From the NCBI RefSeq assembly GCF_037042905.1, contig NC_087254.1, positions 3,720,001-3,784,000 of the forward strand: 64,000 bases of DNA. The letters are read 5' to 3'. The position numbers and the translations under genes were made by a program. The notes beneath the pieces are model-generated. The model saw nothing but the letters and a program-made list of their open reading frames with translations, was not told the DNA's origin and did not search any database. This stretch comes from Lytechinus pictus. Lineage: Eukaryota. Shown piece after piece: positions 5,035-54,100 of the stretch (its first letter is position 1; the number at the start of each line of letters is the position of its first letter).

Positions 5035-5312
5035 ATAATAATAATAATAATATAGGGTATTTATATTGCGCACATATCCACCTTGTTAGGTGCTCAAGGC
5101 GCTCCTATATTAACCGGCTAAGCTAGGCGTTCATAGCGCACACAGCTTTTTAAGGAATTACTTCCTACCGGTACCCATTTACCTCACCTGGGTTGAGTGC
5201 AGCACATTGTGGATCATTTTTTTGCCGAAGGAAATTACGCCATGGCTGGGATTCGAACCCATGACCCTCTGTTTCAAAGTCCGAAGACTAATCCACTGGG
5301 CCGCAACGCTCC
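5035..5312 (-). mobile_element. tRNA-derived SINE
   Basis: A/B boxes (GGCCCAGTGG...GGTTCGAATCCC), shared body, (TTA)n tail; related copies at ~9680-9815, 40235-40513 and ~44380-44629. Confidence 0.85.
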
Positions 5313-6532
5313 ACAGACCATAAGAATAAGACGCACTACAAAAGCGTTTACGAAAAAATAACTCAATAGACCAGTTCATAGTTCCCTCATGGGCAGGTAT
5401 GTTCAAATGACCTTTGCTTACTTTCAATGTGATAAGCAAATTTCAAGCATGCCTTACATAGCAGGATGTATAAATTGAATAAACCAGGTGACAAGAATAA
5501 CACTTCAATGAACACTTTATGAAGGTGTTTGTTGCATTTCTACTTTGAATGCCTTTATAACGTTTGTCTGTTTGTAGCATGTTGCTATTACAATAAACTT
5601 GGCCAACCCTACCAGTCGCTAGTACAGTTGACGCATTTAATATTGCTTTATTGTGGATTTAATGAAGAGCTCAATTTAAAAGATATATGAATAATCAAGA
5701 CATCACAGTTGGTGCTTATCTAATTGAATGTCAAGCCACTATGCCTCTTGAGTAGAAATGACCTTCTTCTGATCGTGCGCAGAATGGAACTATGAACTGG
5801 CTTATTGAGTAAATTTGATGCAATAAAACTAATGGGCTGTCAAGAAAACAGGTGAATTTTCTTTGAATATTTGAAAGGAAAGTATTACATGTACTAAGAA
5901 AATATGAAGGCAATTTCATAACTTAATAATATATTTTTTTACGTTGTATGTAGTAATCTTCAGGACCGTGATCATGGTTGTGGTGAAGCTTGCATTAACT
6001 TTTTTTGGGAAACTTTGGGTATGTTCTATGCCATTTAACAACCTAAAAACTAGTAAAGAAAATAAATGGGTTAATTTAAGTGTTTGAGTGGAGCTAATTC
6101 CATTTTATGATGCCTACTCACCGCAGTAACAAACAGCATTTGTTGTCCTTTTTTTACCGGGTTTATGCGAACACGGTATGATGAACTATGCCCCGGCAGG
6201 TTCATCGTTTGTAAACTTATTGAAATATGAATATTAATATAGACAGACATTAAACACCAGCCGCCGTATTTACGCTGGGCACTCGGGCGTGTCGAATAAA
6301 TACACACTCTATACAAACAAGTGACGTCGTATATGCCACACCAACACAGCTTTTGTGTTATGAAATTTACAATAAGTTATCTCTGCACGTAATTTTGTCC
6401 GATATCATTCTTTCGCTCTGATCACGGACTACCTGCGGTGCCAACCGGTTTCTCTCTAAACCGTTCGTGCTGATAAGTCCTTGTTATAAGGCAAACTCTA
6501 GCTGCAATTTAAGTCTTCGAGGAGTTTACAGG

Positions 6533-39060: not shown

Positions 39061-42000
39061 CTGGAAAAAGAAAAAATACACACAAATTCATGTTATATTT
39101 TGTCAACACAGTCCATATGTCAATAAGGTTGCACATACCTTTTGGCAGATGAGTAAAATAGATTATAGAAATGTCATATTCCGTTGACACAATCTATAGT
39201 TTAACTTTGAGAATATAGATATATATGACAGATTCGTATGACAGAACCTCTGGGTCCATTAATAAGCATGTCCACTTATTTTTCATGTATGTCAAATAAT
39301 TGCTTAAGTTGAGAGATTAAAATTGTACATGTTATATGTTTTTTCAAACAATCTCTCTCGACTAGTATTGTGCATATGTGTCAAATTTGACAAGGGAGAA
39401 AAGATCACTGAAATATAAATGTCACATTTCATTTTGACAGTATCATTTATTGAACTTGTACACTTTATCCATCTTAAAAAAATGCACCTTATAAAAAGGA
39501 AAAAAAGGGTCCCATCCCATTCCATCTCAAAGAAAAATATGGAAGGAGTATTACAACCAATTTTAAAACTCTGGGATGTACAAATCAGAGTAGAATTTGT
39601 GCAATACATTTTTCCATCGTCAACTCACATGACATAAATGATCATTTTGCAGCAACATTTCAGAGCACATATCAGGAAAACCTTTTTATACTTTGTACAG
39701 TAACAACGAAGGATGTGACTGTTTACTTACTGTATGCACAAAATATGTCTTGAAATTCTTAGCTTCTACTTTCAGTTGCGGTGACCTGAAAAGGATGGAT
39801 AACCAGATCATATGAGAATTACTTCCACAATAATTTTTGCAGATTTTTTTTTAAATTGAACTGAATACCAGCCCAGAAACATTGCATTAATGGCTCCGAA
39901 TAGAGTGATGCACTCATATTTCTTTTATGAGCATCTTTATAATATCCACATTTTCATGTGCAATATCAATTTTTATACATATTTTAACATTTTTATACAA
40001 TAAATAAAATAAACCCCCCCCCCGAAAAAAAAAATCCTGAAATGTATTTCTTGTCAATCAGTTGGAGCAGGGTTACTGGTTTCAATTGATAAACCTCATG
40101 CATTAGGTTAAATAAAAAAAAATGTACACAAAGGCTTAAAAGCATGCAACTGAAAAATAAATACTCATGTAGCATTAAATGGAAATGGTTTTTCACACTA
40201 AAATCATAAACGTTGCATTCGTGGCAATAAGAATGAGGGTGTTGTAGCCTAGTGGTTAAAACTCTTGTCTTTCAATCTGAGGGACATGGGTTCGATTCCC
40301 AGCCATGGAGTGTTTTCCTTCAGCAAAAAATTCACCCACATTGTGCTGCACTCAGCACAGGTGAGGTTAATGGGAACCGGCAGGAAGCAATTCCTCAAAA
40401 AGATGTGAGCACCGGAACAGGTAGACTAGCGTAGCCAAGTTAATATAGGAGCGCCTTGAGCACCTAGCAAGGTGGATATGTGCGCTATGCAAATCCGATA
40501 GAATAATAATAATAGTTCCATTTATATAGCACTTATTACACTTTTTTCTAAGCGCTTTATATTGCAATTATTATTACCCCGGTCATCGGATCCTGACATG
40601 CCCACACACAATGTATGCACTTTCTCCACTCCCTGGGGAGCATTCCAACAAGAGTTCCAAGACTCAATTGCTAGGCATAATACAGGTACATAGGCTTTCG
40701 CATTCTACAGGGTACCCATTTAACACCTGGGTGCAGAGTGGCAAAGTGTGGATTAACGCCTTGCCAAAGGACGCTAGGCCGTGGTGGGATTCTAACACAC
40801 GTCCCTCTGATTGCAAGGCGAGAGTCAGAACCGGTACACCACAAGGCTTCCATAATATTATTATTTAATCAGGAACAATCGGAAACCCTGCTTTATTTGT
40901 TAAAAATTGAAGATTAGTTTATCTCACCATGGTATTTCTCCCTTGAGGACCATATTTTCAGGATCTACATAATACAAGTGGGGGCCTTCCGTTAGTAGTA
41001 ACATTCTCCTCCTGGCAAACAAACCCTGCCGTGTGCAAATGAACAAAATTCATAAAATAATCAAATCAAATACGCATCCATATATACCGCTTTACACGTC
41101 AATCGTGAAGAGTAACGATTTTTTAAACACCAAACTTTATTATGATCATAGTGTGGTTCGTATTGCGCGCACACCATCCAAAGACACTCATGGCACTAGC
41201 TCAGCAACAGTTCTTTGATATATGAACAAGCTACAAATATAAACACATTCAATTACCCTAAAATCCTAAGAAATGACACATTGCCATAAATAAAAGCATG
41301 AGTTTGTATATCAAATTTGTGTCACTTGTCAAAACTGTATCCCGACGGGGTCTGGTACCCTACTTGCTACCCCGTATATAGTATATGATTCGATCATTTG
41401 TCACAAAAAGATTTTTAAAACGAAATGGATATCAACTTTAATACTGCATTAGCACAGAAGCGAATGCATTTCATAGGTTAATACAGCATGGTAGCCTTTT
41501 AAAAAGTCCTGGTGATCTCACACAACTATGTTGTTGTTGTTGTTATTTTGAATAGGCAAACTAGTCAGTTTTGACTATTGTTGCCTTGTAAAAATGCTTT
41601 CCTTTTTGTTTTCACAACTAGAAAATTTTATTCGTCTTCCAGTGATAATGATGAGGTACGATACCATACATGTTAATGTTTAGAAATGGAAAATTCTACT
41701 CTGATTGCGCGATAGCCAATTTTTTTTTTCCTAAGATGCTGTCCAGGCAAGGGCGGCATGCTGTCGCCTAGGGCTCCTAGTAGGGGCCATGGGCGAAGCC
41801 CCGGCAAGGTTCAGAGGGCCGAAAAGTGATTACACTTCTCTGCCAACACAGAGAAGTGTATTACAATTGCTTTGTGAAACTACCCCTACGTCTGATACCA
41901 ACCTTCCTCTTATCCACCCAGCCATTCTTGAGTATGAGATTGCCTTCCACAAACCGGTGCCATTTGTTCTCCTTCCGTTGCCTCTCCAGTCTCTGCTTGC

Positions 42001-42178: not shown

Positions 42179-45100
42179 TAATCAGTTTTTAAACAGCACA
42201 CAGTACAATGATGTCTCTTCCTGCTTTGAAATAGAAAATGAATCAGAAGGTTGAAAAAGAAAAAAAAACAATCATAGTAATTGAGCCTTTCAATAATCAT
42301 AAAAAGATCTGAGACTAGGAACTACATGTACTTACGATGCATATTGAGCAAGGAAAAGTTAAAGCCATCATCTGTAAAAGCTAAGACTTTACACATGTTT
42401 ATTTTCAAGAGGTACATTGAGGAAGTTTTTCTGTAGTTGAAATGATCTTTACCTGTATAATATCGTGGAAGCATGGGGGGGGGGGTAAACAACTTTTTGG
42501 ATTGAAACAAAGATGTTTTATCAGATGGTAGTCATTGAGAAGCTGTTGTAAATAAAAGAGGGCCAATCAATCCTAGCATTTGTAAAAGAAACTGATTTCC
42601 GAGATAATATTTAATTCATTTTATGGATACATGTATATAGCATGAAAGAAGAATGACGTTACTGAAAAGGTGCCGATTTGCATTTTGATACATTGAATTT
42701 GTTGTTTTATCATGTTGCCAATTTACAGTGTGTAATGATTACCTCAAGTTAAACAGCTTTAATTATGGAACGGCACCACATACAGTACTGGAAATGGTAT
42801 CAAGTTTTTTCAGTATATTTTTCTCTTACTGACCTAGGGTTCCCAGCTTTTCAAAAAAACAAAATTTTCCCTGATGAACTTTAAAAATTTCCCTGATAAT
42901 TATTTAAACCCATTCCCAGTTGTGCATGTTTTCTAAGTTGTTGCAGTGAATTACACATATTTTCAGTATAAAAACAATAATGCAAATCTAATTGGTACCA
43001 CCATAACCAGTCATTCAATGGAAGTTGTTTTGATATGCTACAAAATATAACAGAGTCAGACTGACTACCCTGCTTTCGACTTTTGGGCCGATCAAAATTC
43101 CCTGATTTTTCCCTCGTTTGAGGAATTTCCCCCTGATTTAAGGTATTTTTTTAAATCAAATACCCTGATTTTTTCCTGACTGGAAAAACTCATTTTAGAA
43201 ATAATTTTCCCTGATTTCCCTGATGGGCTGGGCCTGTAACCAATACTCCATCTGTAATTATTAGCATTCAGGATATTGATAAACTGCAAAGTGTCTCCTA
43301 TTAAGGTCTAAAGACACTTTACCTCTATAGCTCATTTTCTGAATTTTTGTTTCATTTAAACTCTGGTCTATAAAAGTTATGGTTTGATTATGGAAAGCCA
43401 ATTGTGCAAGTACAAGTTATATTTCCCAGCTCATTGACAATCAAATAATTTTTGTTTCTGTTTGTAACTTGTAATTTGTAACTGACTTGGAACAGTTTAC
43501 TGAAATAGTAATCTTCATCAATAAAACATGAGGGAAGAGGCAAGACAAGAACAGGTAACATATGAAAATATGCTTTTAAAAAAAAATTTGGCTTCCCATA
43601 ATTTTTTACAGAGTTAGACCATGGGCCTGAGTTAACCAGTGCCGGCCACACAGAAATGTTTGTTAGCCTAAACAGAGCGCTAAAAGTAAGCCCAGTCACA
43701 TCTTTTGGATTGTGAAGTCAAAACATTTATTTAAATGTGTAAGTATTAAATGCATTGTTGTAACATCCGGCATCGCTGGTCTATTGCCGGCTGTAACAGG
43801 GCCTCTGTTAGCGCATTGTTTATAGCGGTAACAACGTTTCTGTGTGGTCAGTACAGGATTTCAGAATACGGGCCTATGGTCAGGCGAGGGCGCTGTGATA
43901 CTCACATAGTACTCGCTATGGATCTCTTCCCCATCGACCACTGTGCATGGTTTGAGTACAGGTGCCTTCTGCTCGTGGAGATTGTCCCAGTCCACGTCAT
44001 CTAAGAATGGATGTGCCTTCAGGGCAGGGTACCCGCCACACTCGTCACAGCCTAATCTTTTGAGCGGATCAATAACCTACAACAGCGAGGCAAACAAAGA
44101 ATTCTCAACTAACTACCGGTACATTTAGCAGGGGTAAAATAAAATTGGGGGCTGGGGCCATCTGACTCCAAGATGCCTCAAAATGCCTCCTCAGCCCTGG
44201 AAAACGAACAAAAAAAAAAAACCCTAAAATTTTTGTAGGGTTCAATGTAAACTGGAATACAATAATGCAAATCAAGATAGTGGCAATCTCAGTCAGTATC
44301 ACCCCCCCCCCCAAAAAAATATTTCCTTGTCAATAATATAGCCTTTGAAATAACAACCATGAATATATATACTCAGTGATTATAATAATAATAATAACTT
44401 CATATCCATCCAGGTTAGTCACTTCTGTTCTGAAAACTGTTCTCCCGGCGGGCCCTGCTTTACCTGATAATGTTATTATTACCCCAGCTTTAGCGAGGCT
44501 ACCTTAATCGGGCGCTCGAGCATTCAAGGAATTTCTTCCTACCAGGTACCCATTCACCTCACCTGGGTCAAGTGCAGCACAATGTGGGTAAATTTCTTGA
44601 AAGAAAACATGCCATGGCTTGGATTCGAAGCAACCAATATGCATTTATATATAATGAACAAATTTAGACCTTGGAACCAACTTGCATATATAATGAGCTG
44701 TGACCTTTGACCTGCAGACTCCGAATTCGAAATTAGCCAGTATTTTGGTGTCATCTACCTACTCACCCAAATCTTTTTAAATCTGTTGAATATTTCATAA
44801 ATTATCATGCAGAAACCAACTCGCATATTTAATGAGCTGTGACCTTTGACCTGCAGACTCCGAATTTGAACTTAGTCTGTATTTTGGTGTCATCTAGCTA
44901 CACAACCAAATTTTTAAAAATCTGTTGAACATTTCATAAGTTATCATGCGGAAACCAACTCGCATATTTAATGAGCTGTGACCTTTGACCTGTGGACTCC
45001 GATTTTGAGCTTCCCCTGTATTTTGGTGTCATCTACCTACACACCAATTTTTTTTTTTAATCTGTTGAATATTTCATTTCATAAGTTATCATGCGGAAAC

Positions 45101-48100
45101 CAACTCGCATATTTAATGAGCGATGACCTTTGATTTGCGGACTCCGAATTCGAACTTAGCCTGTATTTTGGTGTCATTTACCTACACACCAACAATTTCT
45201 AAAATCCATCAAATATTTTTCGAGTTATTGCGTGGAAACCAAGTGGGGGGGACGAACGGAAGGATGGACAGACGGACAGGGGAACGCTTAATGCCCCCTA
45301 CGGACTTCATCTGCGGGGGCATAAAAAAAGCCTGTTTACAGTGACTTCTCCATACTGGATTTACTACAGTAACCATGCCCCTGTAAACTGTGACCCCATG
45401 ACTGCTAGATTCTAATTTTATATAGAAAGAAATAGTGCACTTACAAGAAGTTTTGAGACCAAGTCCCGTGCTGTCTGAGAGAACCCATCTGGAAAGTCAT
45501 ACTCTAACTTGATTATTTTCTGGAATATCATATACTCATTGCTGTTGAGGAAAATGGTATGAAAAGACAACGTTATTACATAGTACAAAATGACCAAAGC
45601 ATTTTGACATTGTCAGTCGAACAAGATCACTGCCACATAAAGAAAGCTAAACAACATCAAAAGGCATCTATCAAAACACCTATTTAGCTGGGCGTTGTGG
45701 CGTGCGCCTGTAATCCAAGCTATGTGGGGAAGTTACAAATTGATGCAGAGGTTCGAGGTTTGAGCCCTGGTCACGTCTTTCGGATGGTGACGTTAAAGGT
45801 CGGTCCCAGACGTAAATAATCATATCTGATTGATACACGTCTGACAAAACTCAAATACACACACACACACACCTATTTCAGTGGGTGACTTCAAGTTCAG
45901 TGTTGACCTTTTGGCGTTGGTGTTAGGTGTTAGATCTTTAACATACCAAACATAAAATGACGATGGTCCGAAAAGTCACTTTCTATTTGTTGTCTTGTTG
46001 AGATGTCAATAATGTGATCTGGATCAATTTTACAAACTCTGAATAAGTTTTGGAGCTAGGGAAGCAATCCAAATTTCAACACCAACACCGGACTTGAAAT
46101 CACCCGATATTCGTTAAAGATCTATATACAGCAGAAACCTTTTACATTTAATTATGTACAAATGCATTATTATTACAGAATGTTGCAGATGAATATGGTC
46201 CACTGCAAAATGCAAATCTATAAATCTATCATACACGTTTTGAGACCAAGTCCCCTGCTGTCTGTACGTTTGAACAATGCTCCATTGATCAACATTTTAC
46301 TTTTTAAAGTCCTTTTTATTTTTTTTCCTGGTATATCTTTTATGTGTAATATGATAATCAATCGGTCATATGTTTGCTTAAAATACATCATTATGAATAT
46401 ACAGTTTTGCCAGTTTTCTTGATTGACTACTACTACTACTACTGCTACTGCTACTGCTACCGCTACCACTACCACCACTACCACTACCACTACTACTACT
46501 ACTACAGTTTTCTTAATTGACTACTACTACTACTATTACTACTACCACTACAANNNNNNNNNNNNNNNNNNNNNNNNNNNNNNNNNNNNNNNNNNNNNNN
46601 NNNNNNNNNNNNNNNNNNNNNNNNNNNNNNNNNNNNNNNNNNNNNNNNNNNNNNNNNNNNNNNNNNNNNNNNNNNNNNNNNNNTGTGAGAGATGCCTTTC
46701 ACAATTGGCTATCCATAGTTAAACTGCAACTTCAGACCAGAGTTGAAAATAAACCCGTTTAGAATATGAGCCACTGTGATTTCACAGATCAATGAGGATC
46801 AGCAAAATGCAGACAAGCTACAATTGTGACTTGCCACCCCAAAACCAACAATGTTGTTCAAAATGAATATGTAATTGTTATTGAGTTTGAAAAAGCACAT
46901 CATAAGCATTGAAATGATATGATTAACAATACCAAATACAATTAATTGATTAAAAAGTAGAATAAATGCAGCGAGAGCTTTAAATGAAGAGAAGAAAACA
47001 AGGTTTGAAATTTGGAGTTCTCTTTGAAATGAGATGTGCTGCAATCGTGCCCAAATATCCAAGTGTCCTGGAAAAAATTGTGTCAAAGAAAGTCTTATAT
47101 CCTGTCTTTTATTTAACTTTAACAACTTCAAATTTTGGCAGTAGTACTTAGAAGAATTACTCTTTCAGAAAAGATAATTTTCTAATTTGTGCTTTTTTAA
47201 GATCAAATTATTGTTTTGCTTTATATTCACAGAAAACCTTCCCTGGAGACTTACTATTGGATTTTGGGTAGCAGGTCAAAAGGTCAGAATTGATCACATA
47301 ATTCAATTTTTATCAATTTGGCTGCAAAATTCTAAGTGCTTGGAATAAATCATTTCTTTTTACAAAATAATACATTATGGTAGACCATGCGTGACTATAT
47401 TCAATCAAATAGCTCATTCAGTTCCAAAAGATTAATATAAATCCCAATAACATGTTTTCAATTTCACATAGAATGCATTCAATCCAGCACAAGTTAATAG
47501 TAAACATGTTTTTATTATCAAGTTGTACTGCCAATTAAAATCAAGGTTTTTTTCATTAAAGGACAAGAAGACCTAAAAAAAATAATAGGGCAATTACAAA
47601 GAATCCGTACCTTGAAATACATACATAGTATTCATTCAAGTTTTTACGCATAGCGGGATATATTTTTGGAAGTATGGATAAAAAGACATGTATACTGCAG
47701 CCAAATGTAAGATTGCTCTCTCATCTATTAAACTGTAACAAACATCCTCTCTTAGAAATAAGTTCCCCAAAACAAGCAATTCGAGATTGAATTTACCATT
47801 CTACTATTTGAATTTGATGTAAACAGAGTAAGAATAGTCAGTGTTAATTCATTGAATTAGCACGATGTAAAAACTTTCTACTATTGTTTATTTTGTGGCA
47901 ATTATAGGCCACTATTCATCATTTCATGATGGCATCATCAGGCCCAAAGAATGATGTTTATACAAGTACATCTAGGAGCAACATGTACATGTAGTATGTA
48001 TGTGTGTACACGTGTACCACTATAAAAATAAGAAGTTGACTTTTGTACAGTGGTTAAAATTTATAGACTACATGTATGGTTGCATTTCATGCACTTCCTT

Positions 48101-51100: not shown

Positions 51101-53517
51101 CTTCAAGTGGAGAAGTGAAAATAAATGTAGAAAGTTTATCACCTTGCTCTAAATGGAGGTAGCCCTGCTTGTAGTTGATACACTATGCAGCCAAGAGCCC
51201 AGAGGTCCGAGCTAAATAGAGGATGGTATAGAGACATGGTTCCAGAAAGTCAATAATATTACTAACCAAACTTGACAAATGACCAAAAGTTGCATTTAAA
51301 AAAAGATATTTTAAGACTTTCAATTATGAATTTAAATAATCAAATAAATAATATTAACATAATGTAATAACATTGAATAAATTACTGTAAAAATGTTTTT
51401 ATAAAAAATAAATACACATATTTTGTGCCAATCTGCAATGAAAACTGAAAATAACATAGCCATATAATATTTGACAATCTTTACCATGTACATGTTTGAG
51501 CAACATCAAGTATAGGCCTACTGTATACCTATATATGTTTATTAGTTCCATCAAGAAAATGGTCTCTCCCCCTCTCTCATTCTCTCTCTCTCTCTCCACC
51601 TGAGAAAAAATTGAAAAGACTGATGCAAGTGTACATGTAAAAAAAAATGTTCTAAATGACATTATGAACAAGATCTTGAACCAATAATTACCTTTTCGTT
51701 GCAGATTTTTCAGTGAGTAGCTCCGGGGACACATATTGAGCAGTACCAACAAATGAATTTGCACGAGCTACAAAAGAAAACATTAAATGTTATTTATAAT
51801 ATAATATCTGGCTCAATCAACACGATCCACAAATTCAAAACAAGAACAGATAAAACAATCAACAGGAAATTATACACATGTAATAGAGGATATGATCAAG
51901 AGAATCAGGTGCGTTTCTATTTTGATAGTTGGATTTAATTCCTGATTTTGCTTTCCTCATTCTACTTGGGACTTCATTTTATGTTTAGACGTAAATCCAA
52001 CATCCCACTTCAAATGAAATACCGGTAAGCTAGATTAAGGTGGCATATCACAATACTTTTCTCAGTGCCTTTCCAATCAAAGAAATAGTCTATACAAGGA
52101 CCCGTGGAGGATCCAGGATTTTGAGATGGGACGGGGGGGGGGCTCAATAAGAATCTCATAGACTTAATAGCTACATGTACATGTGCATATTGATGTGTTA
52201 CATGTATGTTCAATGGGCAATTCTCAAAATATACAGAGGGCATGCGCCCCTTGCATCCTGCCTGGATCTGCTACTGGCTAACACAAACAATTATCTTAGA
52301 AATTATGTATGGCACTTTATTATATTTCATTCAATATTTTATAAATGATTGATTTCTGTTCCTTTCAAGAATATTTCGGTACTGTACAGACTGTTAAAAG
52401 TAAAAACGAAATTAATGCACAAAGTTTCTAAAAAAGTATTAATAACAAAATCAAATCATATTCCACTTTTACTTATCGATACCCGATGGTAATGTGTTAG
52501 GATTAAAGGTATTATTTAACTTTGTGAGCAGCCGATTTAAAAAAATTTCAAACCAAGATGAAACATGTGTACAAGTACTTGTATTAGAACCAAAAATCCC
52601 TGAAAACAACCATTATTGAGAATGAAAAGCTAAAAATACAAGGCAAAACCCAATTTTGTAATTAGGCGTCTTAAAGACGCTTAAATAGAACACATAAGTG
52701 TATGGGATGAAATTAAAATGGTGTTTCCGGTCACTTTATATTTCACTTTTTTAATCACTAAATAATGATTTCCGGACGCAATTTTTTCTGGGCTACATTT
52801 TTGTAACATATCACACACACAGGTGACAAGTGTGACCTTCTAGCTCAGATTTTTTAAAAGTCAAATCAATGTTAGCCAATCACTTTAAAAGGGTGAAGAC
52901 TACCCTTTACCCCCCCCCCCTCCCTTGAGCCTTTTACTTTTCTACCATGCTAACTTCCAACTTCCAAACGTAGAGGGGGAGGGGGAGGGGGTCATCTTCG
53001 TATCGTCACAATGGATGCTTGGAACATAGCACAATAAAGGGTCATGAGTAGTGCGTAAAATTGCTTCATGAAATACCTGCTTGGGTATACCAAATAGTGT
53101 CATATATATATCAGGGCCCCATCTTACAAAGAGTTACGATTGATCCAATCAATCATAACTCTATGAAAATCCAACAGTGTCATAATTTTTTGTACAGGAA
53201 ATTTGCAAAATGTCCTCTGTAAACAAAGGAGAACACACTAAATCGTCAAGAAATCATTAGATTTATGGATATACATTCATATCTATAATTTTTTTTGAAC
53301 AAACATGCATTTTATATGTTGACTTTGCTGGCTTTCCATAGTTGCGATTGATCGGATCAATTGCAACTCTTTGTAAGACGGGCCCCAGGAATGAAACACA
53401 AGTAACTTACATGACCCATCCTTCTTATCATCAGTCCCTATAATCTTGGCTGTTCCAAAGTCTGTGATTTGTATGTGCATCTTCTCATTGAGAAGAATAT
53501 TTTCCGGTTTCAGGTCT
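38959..53517 (-). CDS. PDPK1: 3-phosphoinositide-dependent protein kinase 1 (PDK1), 3' part; upstream exons lie beyond the window end
   Basis: Exons 53517-53411 ([18 protein letters not shown]), 51767-51692 ([17 protein letters not shown]), 51211-51143 ([21 protein letters not shown]), 45541-45445 ([17 protein letters not shown]), 44076-43906 ([18 protein letters not shown]), 42130-41903 ([19 protein letters not shown]), 41025-40928 ([30 protein letters not shown]), 39785-39731 ([12 protein letters not shown]), 39060-38959 ([10 protein letters not shown]...stop); all GT-AG and in phase. Confidence 0.97.
39731..39785 (-). CDS. PDPK1: PDPK1 exon, PH domain
   Basis: [18 protein letters not shown]. 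Confidence 0.95.
40235..40513 (+). mobile_element. tRNA-derived SINE, same family as 5035-5312
   Basis: A box TAGCCTAGTGG, B box GGTTCGATTCCC, shared body. Confidence 0.85.
40518..40851 (-). mobile_element. tRNA-derived SINE (second family), tail-to-tail with the previous copy
   Basis: Head GGAAGCCTTGTGGTGTACCGG...GTTAGAATCCC; CCCAGGTG..AAATGGGTACC core. Confidence 0.75.
40928..41025 (-). CDS. PDPK1: PDPK1 exon, PH domain
   Basis: [33 protein letters not shown]. Confidence 0.96.
41903..42130 (-). CDS. PDPK1: PDPK1 exon, linker and start of PH domain
   Basis: [30 protein letters not shown]. Confidence 0.93.
42836..43230. mobile_element. MITE with TTTCCCTGA repeats
   Basis: AGGGTTCCC terminus; clustered TTCCCTGA motifs at both ends. 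Confidence 0.55.
43906..44076 (-). CDS. PDPK1: PDPK1 exon
   Basis: [39 protein letters not shown]. Confidence 0.94.
44660..45329 (+). mobile_element. Helentron-associated (HINE/DINE-1-like) element, 4 x ~140-bp tandem core
   Basis: Tandem units, GGAC microsatellite, 3' hairpin ATGCCCCC...GGGGGCAT followed by an A-run. Confidence 0.75.
45445..45541 (-). CDS. PDPK1: PDPK1 exon
   Basis: [32 protein letters not shown]. Confidence 0.96.
45686..45868 (+). mobile_element. 7SL-RNA-headed SINE with Meta-like body and (CA)n tail
   Basis: Head GCTGGGCGTTGTGGCGTGCGCCTGTAATCCAAGCTA; 10-bp TSD ACACCTATTT at 45676-45685 and 45869-45878. Confidence 0.8.
45884..46105. mobile_element. Short MITE
   Basis: GGGTGACTTCAAGTTCAGTGTTG...CAACACCGGACTTGAAATCACCC. 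Confidence 0.65.
46425..46553. repeat. (ACT/ACC/GCT)n microsatellite abutting the gap at 46554-46683
   Basis: Seen directly. Confidence 0.9.
48475..49399. mobile_element. hAT-like non-autonomous element
   Basis: AGGGCTCAAATTAA...TTAATTTGAGCCCTG TIRs; TSD not preserved. Confidence 0.6.
49877..50710. repeat. Element with clustered GTGCCC(T)n motifs, interrupted by a nested MITE (~50133-50292, GGGGAG...CTCCCC)
   Basis: Motif array and TIRs seen directly. Confidence 0.6.
51143..51211 (-). CDS. PDPK1: PDPK1 exon
   Basis: [22 protein letters not shown]. Confidence 0.96.
51692..51767 (-). CDS. PDPK1: PDPK1 exon, activation loop
   Basis: [24 protein letters not shown]. Confidence 0.96.
52507..52884. 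mobile_element. Kolobok-like MITE
   Basis: TTAA flanks; imperfect AG...TAAC TIRs. Confidence 0.55.
53114..53385. mobile_element. Harbinger-like MITE
   Basis: GGGCCCCATCTTACAAAGAGTT...AACTCTTTGTAAGACGGGCCC; CAG flanks. Confidence 0.75.
53411..53517 (-). CDS. PDPK1: PDPK1 exon, catalytic loop/DFG
   Basis: [24 protein letters not shown]. Confidence 0.95.
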
Positions 53518-54100
53518 CTGTTGGACACACATTGGAAGAAAACAAAGTATTATTAAAACACACATGTATGCCCATTAATTTTCATCCGATGCTGGTCTTT
53601 GAACTCGGCATCTCTGTTTAAAAATAAACTGACAGTAGAAGTATGATAATGATTACGATAACTAGGAGCTTTTCATGAAGTTTTGTCAGTGATTTTTCAC
53701 CGACTGATGTAAAAGCTACCGGGAATCCTTGAGTTCAATTGGTCGAGCACAAACTAGCCAGTGAGAGTCACTGAAACTTTGACAGAACTTTACATGAAAC
53801 CATGGAGCTATTTGTTGATAGCGCCATGATGAAACTATCTCCGGAGGATGTTTCCATGAAGATCGAAAGAAGCGGAAAAAGTAGAAATCCCTATGGCTGC
53901 AAAGTAAGATTTATTGTGCAATAAAAGTTTTAACACTGTGGTTGATTAAAAGCAACTCCAAACCGGGGAGGGGCAGGAGATTGAAGGAAGTAGAATTGAT
54001 TTCAACACATACATATATAAAGGCAAGAAAGGTGTGATCAATGCGTAAATGTTATGTACATCAATCATACTATGTACATGTAGATGAACATGCACATAAA

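Follow-up and report, generated by a model that had tools for sequence, protein, structure and literature searches.

The insertion at positions 45686-45868 of the stretch of Lytechinus pictus DNA considered here (64,000 nucleotides in its full length, hereafter "the window") is very probably a recently active, non-autonomous short interspersed element (SINE) of the sea urchin, in which a head taken from 7SL RNA, the signal recognition particle (SRP) RNA, has been grafted on an older SINE with a head of the transfer RNA (tRNA) type. From 5′ to 3′, the element is built of 7SL nucleotides 1 to about 45, i.e., the 5′ Alu domain, the B-box end of a tRNA-type head, a conserved core, and a 3′ hairpin of the long interspersed element (LINE) type with a (CA)n end. 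A preliminary description of the window had drawn attention to the 7SL-like head, the B-box-like stretch, the flanking repeat and the (CA)n end, and all of these features are present where it had placed them. Its reading of them as a chimeric, 7SL-headed SINE of independent origin is likewise supported in most parts, except that the wording "Meta-type" for the body is not.

Anatomy of the insertion

The window copy is 183 bp long; it begins with AGCTGGGCGTTGTGGCG and ends with CTCAAAT(AC)n. Its parts are as follows:

45676..45685 (+), 5′ target-site duplication ACACCTATTT, seen in the sequence
45686..45868 (+), the whole SINE copy, 183 bp, of the doubled-B-box subfamily, delimited by identity to other copies
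45687..45733 (+), 7SL-derived head (helices 2, 3 and 4 and the UGUAAU turn), equivalent to host 7SL nucleotides 1-45, from Rfam and the alignment with host 7SL
45692..45701 (+), 7SL-type A box, a positional assignment as the homologue of human 7SL nucleotides 6-15 (position from PMC7245038, carried over through the Rfam alignment)
45734..45749 (+), linker joining head and B box, without significant 7SL similarity
45750..45767 (+), a pair of overlapping B boxes of the tRNA type, first GGTTCGAGGTT and next GGTTTGAGCCC, from the sequence and the family consensus
45770..45807 (+), conserved core GTCACGTCTTTCGGATGGTGACGTTAAAGGTCGGTCCC, from a four-way alignment with metagenome relatives
45807..45843 (+), 3′ hairpin with a CAGACGT/ACGTCTG stem and an inner AATCA/TGATT stem, from ViennaRNA
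45844..45868 (+), tail, ACAAAACTCAAAT then (AC)n, seen in the sequence
45869..45878 (+), 3′ target-site duplication, seen in the sequence

The 10-bp repeat at 45676-45685 is found again at 45869-45878, so that it brackets the insert. The repeat and the (CA)n tail had both been described correctly, while the length assigned to the duplication is less certain: the (AC)n tail merges into the ACAC of the flanking repeat, and the true target duplication of this copy may be anything from 7 to 10 bp.

The B-box-like stretch noted earlier is real, is of the tRNA type, and lies 3′ of the head. In the family consensus it reads as a tandem, GGTTCGA-GGTTCGA-GCCC, whose second box has the consensus GGTTCGAGCCC and fits exactly the sequence that we take to be the general B-box consensus, GGTTCGANNCC; the window copy carries a C>T change in this second box. 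The linker in front of it may be what is left of a tRNA-type head's anticodon or variable-loop region, and it shows a weak resemblance, too slight to test, to the same stretch of a relative found in a metagenome (L107, see below). At the other end, consensus positions 118-165 fold into the 3′ hairpin with -13.0 kcal/mol by ViennaRNA (z=-4.2 against dinucleotide shuffles), with stems of 7 bp and 5-6 bp followed by ACAAAACTCAAAT(AC)n. Such a hairpin with a short-repeat tail is the layout recognized by the reverse transcriptases of "stringent" LINEs. There is no internal T-run of four or more within the element, and transcripts are therefore expected to end in the flanking DNA.

The 7SL origin of the head

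The claim of a 7SL head was examined by scanning window positions 45000-46500 (1.5 kb) with all Rfam families, and also by a search of the whole 64-kb window. The Metazoa_SRP model matches 45687-45761 with a score of 27.8 bits (the E-value is 6e-5 for the 1.5-kb stretch and 0.0025 for the 64-kb window), and helices 2, 3 and 4 and the UGUAAU turn are aligned at high posterior probability. The score lies below the gathering score of 70 bits, as expected for a match that covers about 48 of the 299 model positions. The only comparable match in the 1.5-kb scan is to mir-1268, presumably an Alu-derived microRNA family, and this match appears to reflect the same 7SL similarity of the head. By contrast with the 7SL score, no tRNA model matches the head region at E<=10 and ARAGORN reports nothing there; a better score as tRNA than as 7SL had been named beforehand as an outcome that would tell against the claim.

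Full-length 7SL genes number seven in the host genome and score 272-283 bits; C10 and C1 hold three each, and C12 holds one. Compared with them as had been suggested, the head matches in 40-41 of 47-48 aligned columns. Its first 30 nucleotides are identical, 30/30, to the C12 paralogue, and the helix-2 form ACT...AAGT, which in the other six genes reads ACC...AGGT, is common to the head and this paralogue. The local alignment between head and host 7SL scores 60, against 15.5 +/- 2.4 for 500 dinucleotide shuffles, none of which (0/500) reaches 60. Furthermore, the 5′ end of the SINE falls within 1 nucleotide of the 7SL gene start. The C12 gene (L037, C12:4895279-4895577), which has a U-A pair in helix 2 where the other six have C-G, is the best match and likely represents the source type of the head.

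The similarity is confined to this part. Bases 48-183 compared with host 7SL on either strand score 15, i.e., chance level (shuffles, 15.3 +/- 2.0), and judging from these alignments the acquired portion is the 5′ Alu domain only. As in SINE1 elements, the 5′ part is derived from 7SL RNA, while the retention of both the 5′ and the 3′ ends of 7SL (a complete Alu domain) seen in SINE1 is absent. Two candidate features were rejected on the way. A likeness by eye to helix 5 or the S domain beyond base 48 is at chance level in the shuffles on both strands. A supposed compensatory change in helix 2 arising inside the SINE (ACC/GGU to ACU/AGU) is already present as a pair in the C12 paralogue, and is thus inherited.

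Observations were also made around the host 7SL genes themselves. Six of the seven (L031-L036) have a canonical B box, GGTTCGAGTC(C/T), 15-45 nucleotides past the T-run terminator, with flanks otherwise diverged, and the C12 gene is without such a box; the arrangement resembles what we believe to be that of yeast SNR6. Derivation of the SINE B box from these downstream boxes was considered and found unsupported, the flanks of the two kinds of box being not significantly alike on either side (p>=0.1). In addition, an old copy of the SINE, about 90% identical, ends 33-35 nucleotides upstream of each 7SL gene on C10 (L031:1291-1464, L035:1295-1467 and L036:1316-1467), and separates a conserved CCCTCAATA.GACAATAAA element from a -30 CCTTAATTTCGC element. 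The C1 paralogues L033 and L034 have the uninterrupted CCCTCAATA.GACAATAAA / CCTTAATTTCGC arrangement. The insertion therefore predates the local gene triplication.

A young family spread by retroposition

The element belongs to a family and is not a single-copy chimera. A search of the host genome gave at least 1,748 first-look candidates, of which 46 were scored and found 91-100% identical, across all large scaffolds; over 181 bp, the identity of the window copy to a copy on C8 is 100%, and dozens more on all large scaffolds are 98-99% identical to it. Whole-genome pattern counts, allowing up to 2 mismatches and using reversed patterns as controls, found the 25-mer of the hairpin 3′ arm and tail 1,358 times (control, 0) and a 28-mer over the junction of head and body 774 times (control, 0). 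The uniform chimeric structure of so many copies distinguishes the family from 7SL retro-pseudogenes, and its size is about 1,400 elements.

Twenty loci on C1 picked solely by a perfect tail serve as an unbiased sample. Thirteen are full-length with the 7SL head, and these diverge from the consensus by 1.6% on average, indicating a young family. The other seven are truncated at the 5′ end (five at consensus 80-91, and one each at 38 and 147), with unrelated DNA upstream of each. There are two young subfamilies of 183 and 176 nucleotides, which differ by the 7-nucleotide GGTTCGA repeat, the 176-nucleotide form having a single B box. An older form, about 90% identical, has the doubled box with a shorter loop and linker, and its helix-4 loop and one helix-4 base are changed with the pairing kept (UCC/GGG vs UCC/GGA). 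Given this low divergence and the number of nearly identical copies, it should be possible to recover the active source genes, insertion polymorphisms and the partner LINE, all in a sea urchin that serves as a laboratory model.

One cluster of 5′ truncations is found at consensus 80-91, immediately 3′ of the B box (5/20 of the sampled loci; L051, L052, L054, L057 and L060), and a second cluster lies at 143-147 inside the 3′ hairpin (6/69 matches of a filtered tail pattern). Both clusters may be sites of reverse-transcriptase stalling or of RNA processing.

That the insert is a retroposed SINE, as proposed at the outset, agrees with the hallmarks seen across the family: dispersal, a constant 3′ end with 5′ truncation, and target duplications. 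Direct repeats abutting both ends were scored in 34 independent full-length copies, with flanks paired between different copies as the control. Repeats of at least 6 bp flank 26% of the copies against 4.1% in the control, and those of at least 7 bp flank 15% against 1.0%. The duplications are short and variable and often start with CAC or ACAC, as in the tail, which suggests priming by microhomology. Empty sites are also found: a 37-nucleotide SINE fragment lies within another repeat (L053) with the duplication AACGA, and 11 paralogous copies of this repeat have the site empty.

Relatives with other heads and the origin of the chimera

A scan of public metagenome contigs with the core motif gave seven matching contigs, of which three (L107, L109 and L105) align nearly base for base with the window copy from the B box through the core and hairpin to the tail, so that the B-box stretch of the SINE is homologous to theirs. 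The core is nearly invariant in this four-way alignment, and the hairpin stems are kept while the loop varies. The 5′ parts of the three are unrelated to 7SL and to one another. In L107, CTTAGTGGTTA resembles an A box and GGTTCGAATCC is a perfect B box; the L109 head has A-box and B-box motifs of the tRNA type, and its stretch GGTCGAGCGGTAA resembles a class-II tRNA. L109 is probably from a related echinoderm, because its flanks share other short repeats with the host genome at 80-88% identity.

Since these relatives have the same B box, core and tail behind non-7SL heads, the most economical reading has 7SL nucleotides 1-45 take the place of the front of a tRNA-type head in an older SINE, whose B box was retained; this agrees with the chimera of a 7SL piece and a tRNA-type SINE proposed earlier. 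The replacement could have taken place through a template switch from the tRNA-type SINE RNA to 7SL RNA, or through insertion of a 5′-truncated SINE inside a 7SL gene. The hagfish SINE1 has been inferred to have arisen by the same kind of chimera (Kojima, 2020; PMC7245038). The preliminary claim that the element originated independently of Alu/B1 and of the hagfish SINE also holds, because the head matches the host's own C12 7SL paralogue at 30/30.

Proposed propagation and the role of the head

Promoter motifs for RNA polymerase III are present in the element, namely the 7SL-type A box by homology and the B box GGTTCGAGCCC. In human 7SL, the A box occupies positions 6-15 (PMC7245038). The tRNA-type B box at SINE positions 65-82 stands at nearly the same distance from the start as the B box of 7SL itself (76-86), which is lost. 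RNA polymerase III would most likely start at 7SL +1, using an A box of the 7SL type and a B box of the tRNA type. The 3′ hairpin and tail of the transcript would be recognized by the reverse transcriptase of a putative "stringent" LINE, and the (CA)n end would prime on nicked target DNA. Such priming would produce short variable duplications, frequent 5′ truncation, and insertions into the tails of resident copies. In addition, the retained fold may recruit SRP9/14 and thereby carry the RNA, on the model proposed for Alu, to ribosomes at which the LINE is being translated. The retained piece presumably corresponds to the 50-nucleotide 5′ domain crystallized with SRP9/14, and an SRP14 exon is present in the host genome. 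RNA runs labelled "sea urchin metagenome" and "echinoderm metagenome" contain a few words of the SINE body, which is weak evidence that the body occurs in RNA.

One alternative accepts the same element and denies the head any SRP9/14 role in its spread: the 7SL piece would act solely in promotion and initiation of transcription, supplying an A box in place of the front part that the tRNA-type head has lost. This is possible, and we think it somewhat doubtful. The 7SL A box (human 6-15; PMC7245038) is indeed inside the retained piece, the 3′ half of the Alu domain is absent, and the relatives with tRNA-type heads make use of the same body and tail without any 7SL sequence. What is kept, however, goes beyond the A box: the whole three-helix 5′ domain with its UGUAAU turn is present and stops exactly at the 3′ strand of helix 2. 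Furthermore, the helix-4 change of the older subfamily preserves pairing, and the independent 7SL SINEs of hagfish and mammals also keep the fold.

It is very improbable that the copies are a dispersed satellite or segmental duplications and that the repeat flanking the window copy is coincidental. Some material does have this character. Head-to-tail dimers are common, and dimers and one tetramer joined by 0-3 nucleotides were seen (G000:C19:10865242-10865949; L039 and L040; pairs on C8, C2, C4 and C7); a repeat of at least 3 kb carries a SINE dimer or monomer at six or more loci (L039 vs L040, 97% over 3 kb); and many copies are without a clear target duplication. The dimers are, on the other hand, compatible with insertion into the (CA)n tails of copies already in place. 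Most copies have unrelated flanks and lie on all 19-21 large scaffolds, target duplications are about sixfold over control, 5′ truncations occur with a constant 3′ end, and one insertion has 11 paralogous empty sites, which contradict this explanation for the bulk of the family. Least credible of all is a head diverged from a tRNA or another small RNA with a chance likeness to 7SL, for which the sub-threshold Rfam score (27.8 against 70 bits) and the tRNA-type B box 3′ of the head might speak, and which is already contradicted by the 30-nucleotide run identical to a host 7SL paralogue, the 0/500 shuffles, and the silence of the tRNA models (E<=10) and ARAGORN.

For a 7SL-headed, LINE-dependent SINE descended from one with a tRNA-type head, several observations count on the other side. 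All described SINE1 lineages keep both terminal regions of 7SL, and the urchin element has the 5′ region only; with the 3′ end missing, in contrast to all other 7SL SINEs known, the element may bind SRP9/14 more weakly or not at all. In SRP Alu RNA, tertiary pairs are made by two loop cytosines, and at one of these positions the element has U. As to the ancestor, neither Rfam nor ARAGORN calls a tRNA in the heads of the metagenome relatives, for which "tRNA-like" refers to their A- and B-box motifs only, and no tRNA-type head with the same tail was found among the sampled tails of the host genome (0/20), where the L107 head has no match either. As to the partner, none of the 30 best reverse-transcriptase loci of the host genome has similarity to the SINE tail. 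A filtered tail pattern gave 69 matches, all of them SINE variants, indel-bearing or truncated copies. A LINE on one of the metagenome contigs (L105:215-3190) was also rejected as partner: it ends in a (CATTGT)n tail of its own about 150 bp upstream of the SINE copy there.

Further searches for the partner gave little. A DNA query with the tail only gave nothing, and a shared AAGGCACT junction occurs only twice. The 37-nucleotide tail fragment in L053, taken up as a lead to a LINE, is a truncated SINE within another repeat. The L105 LINE itself has an 835-aa open reading frame with a reverse transcriptase (RVT_1, 124 bits) and an A/T-rich 3′ untranslated region.

Comparison with known 7SL-derived SINEs

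7SL-headed SINEs had been listed at the outset from Euarchontoglires and hagfish. Both entries are right and the list is incomplete, the shrew-mole Urop having been added in 2024 (doi 10.1101/2024.08.25.609555). The hagfish family was the first evident SINE1 outside Euarchontoglires (Kojima, 2020; PMC7245038), and the authors of SINEBase count three independent origins, in supraprimates, shrew mole and hagfish (Kosushkin et al., 2024; doi 10.1101/2024.08.25.609555). In the published literature searched, no 7SL SINE was found in molluscs, sea urchins or other invertebrates.

The closest parallel is SINE1-1_EBu of the hagfish Eptatretus burgeri (PMC7245038), in which a 7SL head is likewise fused to an older tRNA-derived SINE. 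It is also young, with a few thousand copies or fewer, a microsatellite tail other than poly(A), an origin independent of Alu, and a presumed dependence on a stringent LINE and not on L1. It differs in that both 7SL ends are kept and in its bipartite tail of RTE sequence, which closes with (AAC)n, whereas the urchin SINE has only 7SL nucleotides 1-45, a tRNA-type B box, a hairpin with (CA)n, and an invertebrate host.

The Alu, B1 and FLAM elements of Euarchontoglires and the shrew-mole element Urop likewise begin with the 5′ Alu domain of 7SL; for them, too, transcription by RNA polymerase III from internal boxes is presumed, and SRP9/14 is the proposed route to the LINE machinery. They consist, however, of 7SL sequence only, the 5′ and 3′ ends being joined after a central deletion of about 183 nucleotides, and they have poly(A) and are mobilized by L1. 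The urchin SINE has no 3′ part of 7SL, a foreign body and tail, and no poly(A): the poly(A) tail without LINE-derived 3′ sequence of Alu and B1 is replaced by the hairpin and then ACAAAACTCAAAT(AC)n. Composites of 7SL-derived and tRNA-derived parts are also seen in the Tu-type SINEs of tree shrews and in GarnAlu of the bushbaby (cited in PMC7245038). In those, complete monomers descended from the one 7SL SINE of supraprimates are joined, while in the urchin SINE the front of one tRNA-type head has been exchanged, inside a single monomer, for a 47-nucleotide 7SL piece. Within the same host group, SINE2-3_SP (Deu) and SINE2-1_SP/SINE2-2_SP (Meta) of sea urchin (PMC4824008) share with the element the order of parts 3′ of the head, with a conserved core immediately after the B box and then a LINE-type tail, and differ in their full tRNA heads.

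From these comparisons, we would put forward only tentatively, as a claim falling a little short of an even chance, that the element is the first invertebrate 7SL-SINE lineage, the fourth independent origin, and the only one in which nothing more than a 50-nucleotide 5′ Alu domain is kept, on a SINE whose head was of the tRNA type and whose tail is of the stringent-LINE type. Specialists hold 7SL-derived SINEs to be extremely rare, and the three origins counted all lie within vertebrates; a lineage in echinoids would demonstrate that neither invertebrates nor LINEs beyond L1 and RTE are barred from the 7SL route. If the minimal domain binds SRP9/14, docking at ribosomes would be a general and repeatedly found route of SINEs to LINE proteins, and SRP9/14 docking would be no peculiarity of L1 and Alu. 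The element may also be regarded as a natural deletion experiment, in which a minimal 5′ Alu domain with a tRNA-type B box separates the promoter role from the proposed SRP9/14 role.

The core and neighboring repeats

The preliminary description had likened the body to the central domain of MetaSINEs. The core GTCTTTCGGATGGTGACGTTAAAGGTCGGTCC is, we believe, closer to the 5′ part of the Deu/Nin-DC domain than to Meta: what we take to be the Deu-domain 5′ part (the Nin-DC part) reads CTTTCGGATG-GACGTTAAA....GGTCC, also GTCTTTCGGATG..GACGTTAAA....GGTCC, and the likeness is a lead and not a test. Three further metagenome repeats (L104, L108 and L110) have the core motif inside a longer shared domain. 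In MetaSINEs, a 66-bp Meta-domain directly follows the tRNA-derived promoter; of the sea urchin elements, SINE2-1_SP and SINE2-2_SP are MetaSINEs and SINE2-3_SP is a DeuSINE (PMC4824008). The promoter of the 7SL-headed element is made of 7SL and a B-box remnant, not of a full tRNA head.

A foldback repeat resembling a miniature inverted-repeat transposable element is found at about 43610-43860 of the window and at about 1220-1440 of L025. Its center in the window (43691-43722) is a CpG-decayed version of the SINE core (AGTCACATCTTTTGGATTGTGAAGTCAAAA), and the motif is therefore not confined to SINEs in the host genome.

Unrelated SINE copies with tRNA heads occur at about 40230-40440 (+) and about 5180-5335 (-) of the window and at about 2930-3150 of L011. 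They have a B box GGTTCGA(T/A)TCC (at 40289-40299 on the plus strand and 5249-5259 on the minus strand of the window) and then CAGCCATGG...TTCCTTCGGCAA...CCAGGTGAGGT, and may be of the sea urchin MetaSINE type. A profile of the 7SL-headed element does not detect the bodies of the two window copies.

Besides repeats, the window has an assembly gap (Ns) beside simple repeats at about 46520-46700, and an exon-like open reading frame at 53283-53528 (-) with protein-kinase subdomains VI-VII (DLKPENILL...DFGTAK). A bindin gene, an echinoid marker, is present in the host genome (236.7 bits).

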